In this document: piece by piece, positions 3,001 to 56,293 of the stretch
Layout of the letters: every line of letters starts with the position of its first letter
How positions within the stretch are numbered: position 1 is the first letter of the stretch
Sequence record: PP885688.1
Strand: one strand, 5' to 3'
DNA length: 64,000 bases
Translations under genes and position numbers: made by a program
The notes under the pieces: generated by a model
What the model was told of the DNA's origin: nothing
Database searches by the model: none
What the model saw: the letters and a program-made list of their open reading frames with translations, nothing else

Positions 3001-4572
3001 GTAGGTGCCGGGCTTGAGTGCATTGCCGGTCAGATTCCCGATCGGATCGATGAAGAGGCCTGCAGGAGCACCCGCGAGCGAGAACACGGCTCCGGCGACA
3101 GGCACGGCGAGCTGGGTGTTGGCATTCAGATGAATCAGCGGGAGCGTCTGGCCGATGTTCGAAGTGAAGTTAGGTCCGCCGGTCGCCGTCACGATGATGG
3201 GTTGATCACCGTTCGAGAGAACGACGGTCTGCGCGTAGCCAGTGCGGGTCGGGTTAGACGAGGCATTGACTGCAGTCGCAGAAAGGATCCACTTCTGGTT
3301 GAAACCAGACTCAGGAAGGGTCAAACCAACCGTAGCCACAGGATTCGCTGCAGTGAGCGAGACGGTCTGGGTCGACAGGGTTGCGTTGCCTTCGAGATTG
3401 CTGCCGGTCGAGACGGCGATCGAGACGGTGAGGACCTCGCCCGCGTTGAGCTCAGCGGCTGGAGTGGAGATGGTAACGGTGGGAGTGTCGCCGGTAAATC
3501 CGCGAGCCTCCGGAGAGCTGAAGGAGAGCTTGACCGCATCGGTCGAGTTCCAGGTGGCGACGTTCGAGCAGGGGATACCAGCGCCGGATGAGTTGATCGT
3601 CGGAGCGATGATGGCCTCACCGAGGATCACACCGCTGACGGAGTTCTTGGCCTTGACTGTGAAGCCGACATTGCCGGGGGTAGCCGGTAGCCAGACAAGC
3701 GTCGTGTCGTTCGCTGTGCCGCCAGAGGAGATGTTGCCGGTCGCGGTGCCGGTGACATCCCACTCGTAGGTGACGGGAACGGCCTGGCCGCCGAGGAAGT
3801 CGAGGTGGCTTACCAGCGAGAACGCGTTGAGGTTGGTGTCGTAGGTGAGCGATACGCCGAGGTCGACGGTACCGGCCTTCGCGGTCAGGCTCTCAATCGT
3901 GATCTCCTGCGTAAAGCAGCGATCCGGATTGTCGTACATCGAGCCAGGCAGGTAGGCCTGAAGCGTGAGCTGCAGAGACGCGGGGCTGCCGGTGAAGAGT
4001 GCAAGTCCGCCAGAGACGTTCTCATCCGAAGGCTCATCGACGCGCAGACGCATCGAGCTTCCGTCCGAGGTGATGAACTTCATTCCTGGGGGAAGGACGG
4101 CGGGGGTGATGAACTTGACGCCCTCATCGATCACACCATTGAGGCCGATGCCCTGGACGATGATGTCGGGAACGGTGCTGTCGTAGGACGGGATGCTGAA
4201 GTTGGTTGCGCCGGTGGTAGCCGCGATCGAGAAGGGATCCTTCACATCGAGGAAGACCGCGTAGTTGACTGTGGTCACGCCGTCGTTGGCGGTGACGATG
4301 AACTGGTAAGGATTCGACTGGGCCTGAGCGTTCGAGAACATCAGGGTGGCGATCAGAGTCGTCGGATCGAGGTTGAGCGTGATCCATGAGGGATTCTGGC
4401 TCAGCGACCAGCTGACCGTCGGCGAGGCCGCTCCGGTAGCCGTCAGAACGCCAAGCAGGCCTGATGCGGTCGAGGCGACACGCACGGCAACGCCGTTCTT
4501 GCTGCTGTTCTGTGCAAGAGGAACGACCGAATTCTGTTTTGCGATGAAGCTCGCCGTTAGCGCCAGGCTCAT
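1..4572 (-). CDS. Giant virion surface/tail protein with multiple putative Ig (He_PIG-like) repeats; 3'-truncated by the window edge (>1524 aa)
   Basis: Frame read manually from ATG 4572 (MSLALTASF) to base 1 without noticing a stop; absent from the ORF track because the stop lies outside the window. Contains segments such as LKITTAALPQAVVGTAYNIQIQNSGGIPPFQWSLVAGNLPLGLSIDPQTGIIVGTP, typical of putative Ig domains. Confidence 0.85.
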   Translation of the reverse strand, partial: MSLALTASFIAKQNSVVPLAQNSSKNGVAVRVASTASGLLGVLTATGAASPTVSWSLSQNPSWITLNLDPTTLIATLMFSNAQAQSNPYQFIVTANDGVTTVNYAVFLDVKDPFSIAATTGATNFSIPSYDSTVPDIIVQGIGLNGVIDEGVKFITPAVLPPGMKFITSDGSSMRLRVDEPSDENVSGGLALFTGSPASLQLTLQAYLPGSMYDNPDRCFTQEITIESLTAKAGTVDLGVSLTYDTNLNAFSLVSHLDFLGGQAVPVTYEWDVTGTATGNISSGGTANDTTLVWLPATPGNVGFTVKAKNSVSGVILGEAIIAPTINSSGAGIPCSNVATWNSTDAVKLSFSSPEARGFTGDTPTVTISTPAAELNAGEVLTVSIAVSTGSNLEGNATLSTQTVSLTAANPVATVGLTLPESGFNQKWILSATAVNASSNPTRTGYAQTVVLSNGDQPIIVTATGGPNFTSNIGQTLPLIHLNANTQLAVPVAGAVFSLAGAPAGLFIDPIGNLTGNALKPGTYTFQIAADAPGFARGYSSVITLVASAFIPPLTITDAVPSVASLPDNQQFTVSWGYSGTPVTLNMLQGFTVRSVLGSTQTATSQTGSSVITIYGSSYFGDAYSIPTLVISSSITALGNLPDSPTIGTLDEQFNLTLKWNPLTINGAFQAYKAWNIFLSQPPNGVPQLQSVNGHLPTGLEDSGSTPDSRLYETVLASGDWQVTMQALTANAAIATNSVGWDTPHEFPTAITGASITFDNSTVSLGQTVTISLDPNYIGADTWQAIYPDGTTSGWMPISSKTLAKAMNIAGDQAIVIQTQRDYSKSNPPVKLIRQVTKPIYVMNQQFIPANSGSDDLTGNLGIGGESGFEITDASSASVALQPYEVVVRALVRDTISNELKIMVATSRTSDASSLLGTMAIDVFPIQGRPRVKDLIDPSLYLTAEMGTAGNPVRIAVSALPNIIVGKPMADFPMQVGVNSGVGPFSWYADNLPFGIKLSTSGTLSGTAMTIGTTSCDFSVVDSNVPPFIAHITLPVVVESDLKITTTALPQAVVGTAYNIQIQNSGGIPPFQWSLVAGNLPLGLSIDPQTGIIVGTPVTYNSTTDFNKVFTFTVEVVDAIGALASAVLSCTLAPAALQFGPVDQPEIFANEDFQLAIPVFGGSAPYTLAGFTDDGTIGTGLQIANSGAIAALAGVVPPALTITTTDQLVFPQGYPIDLPIKLEATGGVAPYKFSLVQNNIPASIIWQDLLAYELQGDGDFGAVVQVTDHVGQTATKLINLTAQGKNRGVYTSSPVQVNLNGSNNPTNWTVTKIAALPDAQNEQPYNAGSGTFYGIALYKSGVLHLTQSGGDTPINFTVTKGALPTGIVAFSGNTFGQAQDFSGIVLFNVSGGQNVTDNGNYSFECEFSNIVTDSGSITQSVNRYSITVTTAGGGTTPVVVVISTEDAEIDLSQALSTQPSSGILPWAYPLNAEGGSKSYSWNILGGTTLPGAQLTGFNGQVLTSYTQQTGTFVVVVAATDANGV

Positions 4573-52747: not shown

Positions 52748-53134
52748 ATGAACTTCAAGTCCGTACTCTACCTCGACGACATGCGCACCCCGATCGTCTT
52801 CGGCATCGACGTCGTCCGCAACTATGAGCAGTTCGTATGGCACCTGCAGAACAAGGAGATGCCGAAGCTGATCTCCTTCGACCATGATCTTTCAACCGAG
52901 CACTACCCGGTCTTCGAGAACAAGCCGGGCATGCAGATCCCCTACGACGCCTACAAGGAGAAGACCGGCCTACACGCGGCGAGGTACATCATCGAGAACA
53001 AGCTGCCGCTACAGTACTGGATGGTCCACTCGATGAATGTGCAGGGTCGACTCAACATCGAGGCTGAGCTTCGACGCTACTGTCCCCAGGGCGAGCTGCG
53101 CGGCGTCACGATCCCGTATCGCATCAAGGGATGA
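52748..53134 (+). CDS. Cyclic-phosphate-processing receiver domain protein
   Basis: LYLDDMRTP..VRNYEQF..ISFDHDL..TG..VHSMNVQG pattern. Confidence 0.8.
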   Translation: MNFKSVLYLDDMRTPIVFGIDVVRNYEQFVWHLQNKEMPKLISFDHDLSTEHYPVFENKPGMQIPYDAYKEKTGLHAARYIIENKLPLQYWMVHSMNVQGRLNIEAELRRYCPQGELRGVTIPYRIKG

Positions 53135-53475: not shown

Positions 53476-53552
53476 TCCGGAGTAGCTCAGTGGTAGTAGC
53501 GGCTGGGCTGTTAACCAGAAGGTCGGGGGTTCGATCCCCTCCTCCGGAGCCA
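53476..53552 (+). tRNA. tRNA-Asn(GTT), apparent 8-nt anticodon loop
   Basis: Cloverleaf, G73, CCA; CTGG-gctGTTaa-CCAG. Confidence 0.8.
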
Positions 53553-54147: not shown

Positions 54148-54669
54148 ATGAGCAAGCTGATGAAGAGGCCGGTACTCGTACTCAACGCCTACTACGAGCC
54201 AATCAGTATCACCCCGGCGCAGAATGCCATGAAGCTCCTCGTCAAGGGTGTCGCTGACGACATCACGGAGCCAGAGCAAGACGCTCGCTTCGTTCACATC
54301 AATTTCAGACTGCCGAGCGTTGTCCGTCTGTCTCAGTACAGGCGCATCCCGTACCGGCATGTCATGCCTCACCGGCACAACATCATCCTTCGCGACGGCA
54401 ACACCTGCCAGTACTGCTACCAGGTGTTCCCAAGCATCCAGCTCACGATGGATCACGTCATCCCCCGTGCGCAAGGCGGTAAGTCGACCTGGGAGAACCT
54501 GGTCGCCGCATGCCAGCCCTGCAATGGATTGAAGGCTGACCGTACGCCGGAGCAGGCAGGTATGGAACTCCTCAGGGTGCCGAGGATGCTGTCGATCCAC
54601 ACCTCGCGGCACATGCTGCGGATGCTGGGTAGCACAGATCCGAACTGGAGGAAGTACCTGTACCACTAA
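54148..54669 (+). CDS. HNH endonuclease
   Basis: RDGNTCQYC..TMDHVIPRAQGGKSTWENLVAACQPCN..K. Confidence 0.92.
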   Translation: MSKLMKRPVLVLNAYYEPISITPAQNAMKLLVKGVADDITEPEQDARFVHINFRLPSVVRLSQYRRIPYRHVMPHRHNIILRDGNTCQYCYQVFPSIQLTMDHVIPRAQGGKSTWENLVAACQPCNGLKADRTPEQAGMELLRVPRMLSIHTSRHMLRMLGSTDPNWRKYLYH

Positions 54670-54676
54670 CTTCAAC

Positions 54677-54752
54677 GCCGCCGTAGCTCAGTTGGCAGAG
54701 CACTCCCTTGGTAAGGGAAAGGTCATCGGTTCGACTCCGATTGGTGGCTCCA
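54677..54752 (+). tRNA. tRNA-Thr(GGT)
   Basis: Cloverleaf, loop ttGGTaa, CCA. Confidence 0.93.
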
Positions 54753-54756
54753 TAAA

Positions 54757-55075
54757 TGTGGACTCTGGTTTGGTCCAGTCTAAAGACTCCGTACCTGGAA
54801 GCACTCCGGTGCTGCAGACGACGGGGCAGTCTCCTACGATCTGCCTGAAAGGAATCTGGTGAGCCTTGGCCCCAGTGACCGGGATGGTTGATGAGCATTG
54901 CGACCCATCGGACGCGAGCGGGAATCCGGCGATAACCGGAGATAGAAACACTCGTTTGTCTCGACCGTAGAACAGGGCGACACCTGCCCGGACGTAACCT
55001 CTGCGAAGAGGGTCATAAGCGCGATGATGGTCGCGACTGAGTCCAGTGGTGAATACCTCGGAGAGAGCTCCGGCA
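54757..55075 (+). ncRNA. Candidate large structured ncRNA (~300 nt)
   Basis: No convincing ORF; closing helix TGGACTC/GAGTCCA and at least 7 local hairpins, one with a GCGA tetraloop. Confidence 0.5.
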
Positions 55076-55094
55076 TAAAGTTTAGGAGAGTCGT

Positions 55095-55493
55095 ATGGCG
55101 AAGAAGAGTAAGGTCAGGATCCCACCACCCGCGCCCGCAATCGACCAGTGGTCGTTCCGCACCGCAACGGTCTGCTCCAGCTGCTTCAACAGCAAAGGTC
55201 ACGGTCAGGTATGCGATGGAAAGCCGCTTCGGTTCCTCTCCATCAACGATGTCACGGAGTACGAGACGAACGCAATGATTGCCCAGCTTCGTGAGGAGCT
55301 CAAGACGATCGGCCTCGACTACCTGGTTCACCCTGATCGTAAGGACGGACAGTACGCGCGGGCTTATGTAATTCTTCTCGGGGACCATGTTCCGTATCCG
55401 GAAGAGTTCGACAAGATCTTCCTCCGCGTGATGGAGCCAGACGATCCAGAGGATCTTCCCGTACGGGAACATGCTGGCATAGCTCAGTGGTAG
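55095..55493 (+). CDS. Hypothetical protein (132 aa) with CxxC; 3' end overlaps tRNA-Thr(TGT)
   Basis: AGGAG SD; stop codon 21 nt inside the tRNA. Confidence 0.7.
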   Translation: MAKKSKVRIPPPAPAIDQWSFRTATVCSSCFNSKGHGQVCDGKPLRFLSINDVTEYETNAMIAQLREELKTIGLDYLVHPDRKDGQYARAYVILLGDHVPYPEEFDKIFLRVMEPDDPEDLPVREHAGIAQW

Positions 55494-55547
55494 AGCGTCT
55501 GATTTGTAATCAGAGGGCCGGGGGTTCAAGTCCCTCTGTCAGCTCCA
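55473..55547 (+). tRNA. tRNA-Thr(TGT)
   Basis: TCTGA-ttTGTaa-TCAGA, CCA. Confidence 0.93.
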
Positions 55548-56064: not shown

Positions 56065-56293
56065 CTTTCAACGCACCTCGGAGGAAGCCATGTCACAGCG
56101 GGACGCTATTGGAGCTGTCCAGGATGTGGAGTAAGGCGCGACTTTGATCCGCGCAGCGAGTGTCGCTGCTACCGGTGCCAGGTCACGTTCGATGCGGACC
56201 AGCTCGTCCGCAGTCACCTAACCGGGAATGATGCGATCCCGTTCGGAGAGAAGCTCAATCGTCTCTTCGATCCCGACGCATGAAAAAGTTTTT

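Follow-up and report, generated by a model that had tools for sequence, protein, structure and literature searches.

A candidate structured RNA in the tRNA array of the jumbo phage Tunturi_5

The tRNA array of the jumbo phage Tunturi_5 holds a conserved segment of about 245 nt which, with moderate confidence, we read as the gene of a structured non-coding RNA specific to the lineage of this phage. It extends over positions 54840-55086 on the plus strand of the window, i.e., of the 64,000-nt stretch of sequence record PP885688.1 which was analysed. The reading is carried by a comparison with two related phages, in which invariant blocks alternate with hairpins whose stems have changed on both sides and remain paired. 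Tunturi_5, which the window matches at 100% identity, is a 308,711-bp jumbo myovirus from Arctic tundra soil with an Acidobacteriota host (PMC11924767). The phage and its host, Tunturiibacter psychrotolerans X4BP1, are both in culture (PMC11924767).

The tRNA array and its cargo slot

ARAGORN identifies 25 tRNA genes in the window, without exception on the plus strand; the whole genome of Tunturi_5 has 43. The candidate RNA is located in the 342-nt gap between the end of tRNA-Thr(GGU) and the start codon of gp293 (Table 1). An RtcB gene follows 2.7 kb downstream of the element, and a CCA-adding enzyme and other tRNA-related genes are encoded within a few kb.

Table 1. Coordinates of the candidate RNA, its parts and its neighbours (window positions unless a contig is named)
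Feature	Position	Strand	Remarks
HNH endonuclease gp292	54148..54669	+	Pfam HNH_5/HNH; neighbour, separate from the RNA
tRNA-Thr(GGU), encoded CCA	54677..54752	+	ARAGORN, Rfam; upstream flank of the element in all three phages
5' module, three small hairpins	54753..54839	+	87 nt; dispensable; 77% identical in L072, cleanly deleted in L071
Conserved core of candidate ncRNA	54840..55086	+	~245 nt; 85% identity to L071, 78% to L072
Block A	54840..54853	+	14/14 identical to both relatives
Hairpin A	54856..54875	+	pairs 22-39 and 23-38 altered on both sides
Block B	54882..54916	+	35/35 identical to both relatives
Hairpin B	54925..54940	+	5-bp stem, 6-nt loop; 3/5 pairs compensated
Block C/D	54949..54997	+	49 nt, 90-92% identical
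Hairpin C	54998..55011	+	GNRA tetraloop GCGA (GCAA in L072); one pair compensated, C-G to G-C
Hairpin D (CGCGA/TCGCG)	55020..55035	+	two pairs compensated
Block E	55036..55052	+	94% identical; includes CUGA and the 3' strand of the claimed closing helix
Hairpin E (CGGAG/CTCCG)	55059..55072	+	G.U pair in L072; shortened/shifted in L071; helix 5, 80% of cells paired
gp293, ORFan cargo gene	55095..55493	+	3' of the RNA; final 21 nt overlap tRNA-Thr(UGU)
tRNA-Thr(UGU)	55473..55547	+	ARAGORN, Rfam; downstream flank of the slot
Slot between tRNA-Thr(GGU) and tRNA-Thr(UGU)	54753-55472; L009:6928-7416; L080:4930-5020; L083:1365-1639; L086:5661-6771		
18-nt repeat copies	L071:3707-3724, 3757-3774; L072:2541-2558, 2591-2608; window 55452-55472		
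Core in L071 (JGI sample 3300056829)	L071:3459-3701		85% identical; begins 11 nt past the tRNA; no ORF after
5' module and core in L072 (JGI sample 3300061639)	L072:1905-2232		78% identical; extra 100 nt first, unrelated 55-aa ORF after

The HNH endonuclease gene gp292 has syntenic homologues in L009, L010, L071-L073, L080-L083 and L086, and its position is constant in all related tRNA arrays, with the RNA present or absent. In every related array this 173-aa endonuclease follows tRNA-Thr(CGU). The protein family is very large and common in Acidobacteriota (2527 matches at E<=1e-30, about 53-59% identical). The fixed synteny is odd for a homing-type nuclease. Mycobacterial tRNA arrays carry an HNH gene, too (PMC6582537).

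The gene 3' of the element, gp293, has no homologue among 5.8 billion proteins and none in IMG/VR. It has a good Shine-Dalgarno sequence (AGGAGA, 55084-55089) ahead of its ATG at 55095, and its last seven codons are drawn from the leader of tRNA-Thr(UGU) and from the initial 21 nt of this tRNA. It is missing in L071; in L072 an unrelated ORF of 55 aa takes its place, and similarity between the two was not found.

Throughout this group of phage tRNA arrays the spacer between tRNA-Thr(GGU) and tRNA-Thr(UGU) is a slot for variable cargo. Some lineages have the ncRNA there, alone or together with an ORF; others have small unrelated ORFs, a set of three ORFs, or no more than 91 nt. Among relatives lacking the element, L080 has the 91-nt spacer, L009 and L083 have ORFs and L086 has three of them.

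An 18-nt direct repeat of the GTTACCGTACGGGAACAT type occurs twice just 5' of tRNA-Thr(UGU) in L071 and L072, and Tunturi_5 has one copy within the 3' end of gp293. The repeat may be a footprint of cargo gain or loss, or a leader signal. In L009 a copy of the 5' third of tRNA-Thr(GGU) (L009:6606-6629) is situated 245 nt upstream of the real gene (L009:6851-6927); an ORF (L009:6621-6932) begins within the copy and terminates within the real tRNA. The arrangement suggests an insertion with duplication of a portion of the gene. Further, a non-coding piece of 70 nt located 5' of tRNA-Thr(UGU) is 87% identical between the quite distant phages L072 (2419-2487) and L009 (7252-7321) and is absent from Tunturi_5 and L071. 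It may be a second conserved spacer element.

Other peculiarities of the arrays are recorded here for completeness. The ARAGORN tRNA at window 53476-53552 has an anticodon of two bases. Its 99% identical counterpart in L071, tRNA-Asn(GUU), is without one G that Tunturi_5 has in the 5' strand of the anticodon stem; either the tRNA-Asn of Tunturi_5 is slightly defective or the additional base is a sequencing slip. The array of the related contig L081 contains an ARAGORN tRNA with a four-base anticodon (CCUA, L081:3805-3879), possibly a frameshift or suppressor-type tRNA. Genes with the class II core domain of alanyl-tRNA synthetase (PF01411) are present in L071 (4353-5360, 335 aa), between tRNA-Ala(GGC) and tRNA-Ala(CGC), and in L080 (5613-6389, 258 aa), just upstream of tRNA-Ala(GGC); in Tunturi_5 the two tRNA-Ala genes are separated by 229 nt only (window 56065-56293). 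Finally, gp291 (window 52748-53134) is annotated in GenBank as a nudix hydrolase, and its 89% identical counterpart in L071 (1412-1798) has a precomputed Pfam match to cREC_REC (PF20274). The cREC_REC domain is linked to RNA-repair systems.

Relatives of the element

The nearest IMG/VR phages as judged by RtcB, L009 and L010 (74% amino acid identity), share the HNH gene and the order of the tRNAs with Tunturi_5; neither has DNA that resembles the gap. The first sign of a relative came from DNA contigs of soil and moss metagenome runs aligned on the region. They represent a phage about 90% identical to Tunturi_5 in which the HNH gene and tRNA-Thr(GGU) are followed by the core from position 54840 onward at high identity. 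In this phage 11 other letters replace 54753-54839, and about 90 other letters replace gp293. A search with the HNH protein then yielded two close homologues, 92% and 85% identical, and their contigs, L071 and L072, carry the element. A phage resembling L071 occurs in moss metagenomes from two studies. The sequencing runs listed as containing the stretch include no RNA run.

A covariance model (R1) scores 275-294 bits with these three members only. Searches with nhmmer and the covariance model, which covered 62 RtcB-anchored IMG/VR loci, L073, L080-L083 and L086, found no member beyond L071 and L072. Within the 308.7-kb phage genome BLAST and R1 matched only the element itself, i.e., there is no second copy. 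The more distant relatives L009, L010, L073, L080-L083 and L086, which share the HNH gene and the tRNA order, lack the element; therefore, it is not essential to such arrays.

Scans with exact patterns were equally unproductive. The sole match in viral contigs, L085, is a chance match in DNA of 81% GC without tRNAs. Metagenome contigs gave six matches, to a 19-mer only, one of them in L076, labelled as human-gut metagenome; genome contigs gave no match. Fragments at contig edges were sought with the C-terminal half of the HNH protein, and no new close relative emerged. The empty scans are weak evidence of absence because the source samples of L071 and L072 are evidently outside the metagenome collection. 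On the sequences at hand the putative RNA is a very narrow family of three sequences in the Tunturi_5 lineage of jumbo phages.

Hairpins in the single sequence

A preliminary description, made from the Tunturi_5 sequence alone, had proposed a multi-hairpin RNA of about 300 nt bounded by a 7-bp closing helix. The hairpins which it listed are all in place, as seen with a script for perfect 5-bp hairpins and in the consensus fold. The script finds AGCAC/GTGCT, GGCAG/CTGCC, GATGG/CCATC, TCCGG/CCGGA, CCTCT-GCGA-AGAGG, CGCGA/TCGCG and CGGAG/CTCCG; GGGC/GCCC, a 4-bp stem, is below the script's 5-bp cut-off and is seen as helix 9 of the consensus fold. Nine perfect 5-bp hairpins compare with 4.6±2.1 in dinucleotide shuffles. 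At least nine are present in 40 of 1000 shuffles and also in 8.6% of the 344-nt windows of this genome. Folding energies of the single Tunturi_5 sequence are those of shuffled DNA (MFE z of -0.27 on the plus and -0.66 on the minus strand), and the conserved core alone has a z of about -0.5 in all three members and on both strands. Thus, in the single sequence the listed hairpins are barely above chance. They rise above it only because of the comparison with the two relatives. The idea of a recurring motif was discarded; the frequency of CCGTACNNGGAA in the window is at chance level.

The preliminary description had named folding no better than shuffled controls as an argument against an RNA. 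Single sequences indeed fold no better than their shuffles (z of -0.3 to -0.6), whereas the alignment of the three members does (z=-2.85). Given the significant outcome for the alignment, the test on single sequences does not settle the matter here.

The closing helix, 54759-65 (TGGACTC) with 55039-45 (GAGTCCA), exists in Tunturi_5, but the relatives have not kept it: L071 has lost the 5' strand, and in L072 this strand is mismatched at two positions. A perfect long-range helix of 7 bp arises in 77% of shuffles. The 5' strand of the closing helix is part of the dispensable 87-nt module and the helix is therefore outside the conserved structure. Likewise, the unit has to be trimmed from the claimed 300 nt to the core, with the first 87 nt excluded. 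The 5' module resembles the tRNA-Met/tRNA-His spacer of the distant 303-kb relative L080 (5300-5376, nhmmer E=0.015).

A mosaic of invariant blocks and diverged hairpins

The alignment of the three cores has two kinds of segments. Blocks A and B are without a single change. Block B includes GATGG/CCATC and a 17-nt loop with the motif UGAUGA. Block C/D comprises the 3' strands of predicted long-range helices and an invariant GGGCG/UGCCC hairpin; the sole variable base in predicted helix 7 is a predicted bulge (column 123). Between the blocks identity drops to 29-56% at hairpins A and B and to 69-86% at hairpins C and D. The segment of hairpin A (54854-54881) retains 29% identity in L072, i.e., it has a new stem sequence, and the hairpin is retained. 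Hairpin B has the stems TCCGG/CCGGA, CCCGC/GCGGG and GCAGG/CCTGC in the three sequences, with a 6-nt loop which always ends in UAA. In hairpin D a G-C pair is replaced by A-U and an A-U pair by G-C, and the sixth pair is U.G, U-A and C-G, respectively. Conservation stops at about 55082-55086, immediately 5' of the gp293 Shine-Dalgarno sequence.

Four-fold degenerate sites provide the neutral yardstick. Between Tunturi_5 and L071 they are identical at 72% in the HNH gene, 54% in gp291 and 75% in gp294; between Tunturi_5 and L072 at 46% in the HNH gene. Compared with this range of 46-75%, the 49 invariant positions of blocks A and B are far beyond neutral expectation. The other tRNA spacers of the array are 83-99% conserved, and part of the core's conservation may reflect constraints common to all spacers.

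These data bear on the possibility of a functionless spacer, in which close kinship or a recent exchange mimics conservation and the paired changes arose by luck. Such a reading can point to the number of sequences, which is three, to single-sequence folding equal to that of shuffles and a marginal hairpin count, and to the flanking spacers, which are likewise well conserved. Exchange should leave an even identity across the segment, whereas blocks at 100% are found next to hairpins at 29-56%; a recent exchange of the whole segment would not give such a mosaic. At 46-75% neutral identity, 49 unchanged positions are very unlikely, and the compensated pairs described below, at least ten of them changed on both sides and all re-paired, did not come up in any of 500 shuffles. 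We rate the chance of a functionless spacer as slim.

Compensated pairs and consensus fold

RNAalifold predicts a consensus structure of 69 pairs for the three-sequence alignment, in which 98% of the cells are paired. Ten pairs have changed on both sides, compared with 4.3±1.5 after shuffling of partners (0 of 500 reach ten) and 0-2 if each partner is displaced by 1-3 columns. As a control for circularity, five hairpins defined from Tunturi_5 alone were tested separately: 95.9% of their cells are paired, with six both-sided changes versus 2.2±1.1 (0 of 500). The changes fall on all three branches and include some specific to L071, the lineage without the 5' module. The consensus energy is -65.7 kcal/mol and compares with -52.5±4.6 in alignments shuffled by permuting columns within conservation classes (z=-2.85, 1 of 300).

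Compensatory changes in four hairpins, together with invariant blocks above the neutral level, support the preliminary claim of a structured non-coding RNA. Covariation statistics of the grade of R-scape are not possible because the three sequences are from one narrow lineage. The long-range helices of the consensus fold rest on invariant columns and are predictions only. Helices 6, 7 and 9 form a predicted three-way junction; GATGG/CCATC competes with a long-range alternative, and invariant columns do not discriminate between the two.

Strand and coding potential

The consensus energy of the minus strand, -64.7, nearly equals that of the plus strand. Energy does not decide the strand, which is assigned from a small number of G.U pairs, a single tetraloop and the genomic context. 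One-sided changes pass through G.U pairs on the plus strand in predicted helix 6 (U-A to U.G, G.U to G-C), in hairpin E (G-C to G.U) and in the sixth pair of hairpin D. Such G.U intermediates, retention of the GNRA loop and an orientation which matches every tRNA favour the plus strand. As far as sequence comparison can tell, the element is probably a structured non-coding RNA of this strand.

Another reading is a site acting at the DNA level, e.g., protein-binding palindromes, an origin-like element or a recombination site in the cargo slot. For such a site one can cite the slot's role as a cargo hot spot (L086 has three ORFs in it, L009 and L083 also have ORFs, L080 has nothing), the 18-nt direct repeat flanking the slot in L071 and L072, and hairpins A-D, which are Watson-Crick paired in all members and hence strand-symmetric. 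Yet protein-binding palindromes retain their sequence and do not covary, the G.U intermediates and the conserved GNRA loop are features of RNA, and the invariant blocks are not palindromic. We consider a DNA-level element very improbable.

A missed small protein gene, or a decayed one, can hardly be the explanation. In Tunturi_5 an antisense frame of 113 codons runs through the gap without a stop, and there are plus-strand ORFs of 30-34 aa. However, this frame is interrupted in both L071 and L072, and the conserved antisense peptide pieces occupy different frames in different members. Each plus-strand frame has 4-10 stops in all three members, and the short plus-strand ORFs are without Pfam or PHROG match. 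Insertions and deletions in the core are of 1, 2 and 4 nt, i.e., not multiples of three, and the invariant blocks have no third-position pattern. A conserved ORF, which according to the preliminary description would speak against an RNA, was looked for on both strands; no frame is kept in the three members.

Comparison with known RNAs

Rfam covariance models, applied at gathering thresholds to the whole window and at E<=10 to 54600-55250, match tRNAs only; the same holds for L071 and L072. The preliminary statement that the element lacks signatures of tmRNA, RNase P and SRP RNA agrees with ARAGORN and Rfam. In particular, ARAGORN finds tRNAs only and Rfam has no tmRNA match, no type of RNase P RNA in Rfam, to which there are loose likenesses by eye, matches at E<=10, and the models of SRP/4.5S RNA and 6S RNA are without match. 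Self-cleaving ribozymes (hammerhead, twister, pistol, hatchet, HDV-like) have no Rfam match either. A hammerhead, suggested by UGAUGAG...GAAAC, was rejected on inspection: UGAUGA in block B is preceded by U and not by the C of CUGANGA, and no helix II follows.

In a box C/D k-turn RNP, box C (RUGAUGA) and box D (CUGA) are joined by a terminal stem. In the element, UGAUGA of block B and CUGA of block E do not vary, and GGAU/GUCC could pair as a 4-bp stem between them; the spacing is one base off, and motifs of this length are likely to arise by chance. Neither L7Ae (PF01248) nor fibrillarin (PF01269) has a match in the phage genome, with positive controls. YrlA Y RNAs are structured non-coding RNAs in Ro60/RtcB RNA-repair loci, and RtcB is encoded near the Tunturi_5 element as well. 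There is no YrlA match, no tRNA-like domain and, with positive controls, no TROVE gene in the 308,711-bp genome. As a gene for Ro60 is absent from the phage genome, the idea of a Y RNA was rejected; the absence of phage genes for L7Ae and fibrillarin makes a box C/D RNA less likely.

HEARO, the omega-RNA of IscB, is a structured RNA of about 300 nt beside an HNH endonuclease gene. Size and neighbourhood of the Tunturi_5 element are similar. This candidate was rejected, too: Rfam has no HEARO match, the HNH neighbour has 173 aa with HNH domains only and not the RuvC+HNH pair of IscB, a tRNA is placed in between, and eight relatives have the HNH gene without the RNA.

The stable RNAs 'species 1' and 'species 2' of phage T4 (rnaC, rnaD) are a further comparison. 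They are small, have no known function and are encoded in the T4 tRNA cluster; they are co-transcribed with the tRNAs and excised by tRNA-processing enzymes. The Tunturi_5 element also is situated among tRNA genes on the same strand. It differs in phage, host phylum, size and sequence.

GOLLD and ROOL are structured phage RNAs without known function, 'often near tRNA islands' (bioRxiv 10.1101/2024.12.08.627333). In mycobacterial tRNA arrays GOLLD is flanked by tRNA genes on both sides, and an HNH gene is in the cluster (PMC6582537). The likeness to GOLLD and ROOL drawn in the preliminary description holds for the genomic setting only, i.e., amid the tRNAs of a phage array with an HNH gene nearby. 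It does not extend to sequence or model membership: even at E<=10 the Tunturi_5 element matches neither the Rfam model of ROOL nor that of GOLLD, which covers the conserved 3' domain. GOLLD has more than 400 nt, often 800 nt, and the Tunturi_5 element with its ~245 nt is three to four times shorter. In contrast to GOLLD and ROOL, it has no embedded tRNA and is represented by three sequences from one phage lineage. Most likely, the putative RNA adds a new and narrow family to the structured RNAs known from phage tRNA islands.

Possible function

Neither a promoter nor a terminator of its own was found for the element. We infer from this that the RNA would be transcribed together with the tRNAs, within the precursor of the tRNA operon. 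By analogy with the T4 RNAs it would be released by the nucleases which trim tRNAs, that is, by RNase P cutting at the 5' end of the tRNA that follows and by 3' trimming behind the tRNA that precedes it. The freed RNA would act in trans and be stable during infection. Its role would most plausibly be in the phage's programme of tRNA supply and repair because genes for RtcB, the CCA-adding enzyme and a cREC-type protein are close by and the genome has 43 tRNAs. The long invariant blocks, probably unpaired or paired over long range, suggest binding sites for partners.

A cis-acting function is the alternative: a structured spacer or leader which guides tRNA processing or controls translation or stability of the downstream cargo gene. 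Several observations fit. At its 3' end the conserved sequence passes directly into the Shine-Dalgarno sequence and ATG of gp293, the ORF of L072 also is directly 3' of the core, other spacers of the array are conserved, and neither a promoter nor a terminator belonging to the element was found. On the other hand, L071 has no following ORF and its core nevertheless shows compensated changes of its own, gp293 and the ORF of L072 are unrelated, and distant arrays process the same tRNAs without the element, e.g., with the 91-nt spacer of L080. The downstream gene differs in all three phages, and a dedicated leader for one gene is thus unlikely. Overall, we give a cis-acting spacer or leader a modest chance of being correct.

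Within the preferred reading of a trans-acting RNA one can go further and regard the core as the first representative of a novel class of RNAs that are encoded in tRNA operons and have an active role. This is a long shot. The RNA may bind or mimic tRNAs, and thereby guard or sequester them from anticodon nucleases of the host, or it may present tRNAs to the phage's RtcB and CCA-adding repair enzymes. In another form, by analogy, it may be a small self-assembling or catalytic RNA; ROOL and GOLLD turned out to be RNA-only assemblies. If an active role were true, the unchanged block of 35 nt and the nearly unchanged one of 49 nt would be binding or active sites.

Significance

GOLLD, ROOL and similar RNAs are a standing puzzle: they are elaborate and occur widely in phage tRNA islands, and to our knowledge no function has been assigned to any of them. 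The Tunturi_5 element would be a much smaller RNA in the same type of genomic setting, and it marks the spacer between tRNA-Thr(GGU) and tRNA-Thr(UGU) as a cargo slot in these arrays. Unlike motifs recorded in metagenomes only, as most are, it comes from a phage that is in culture together with its host. Thus, expression, processing, structure and the phenotype of a deletion are directly testable.
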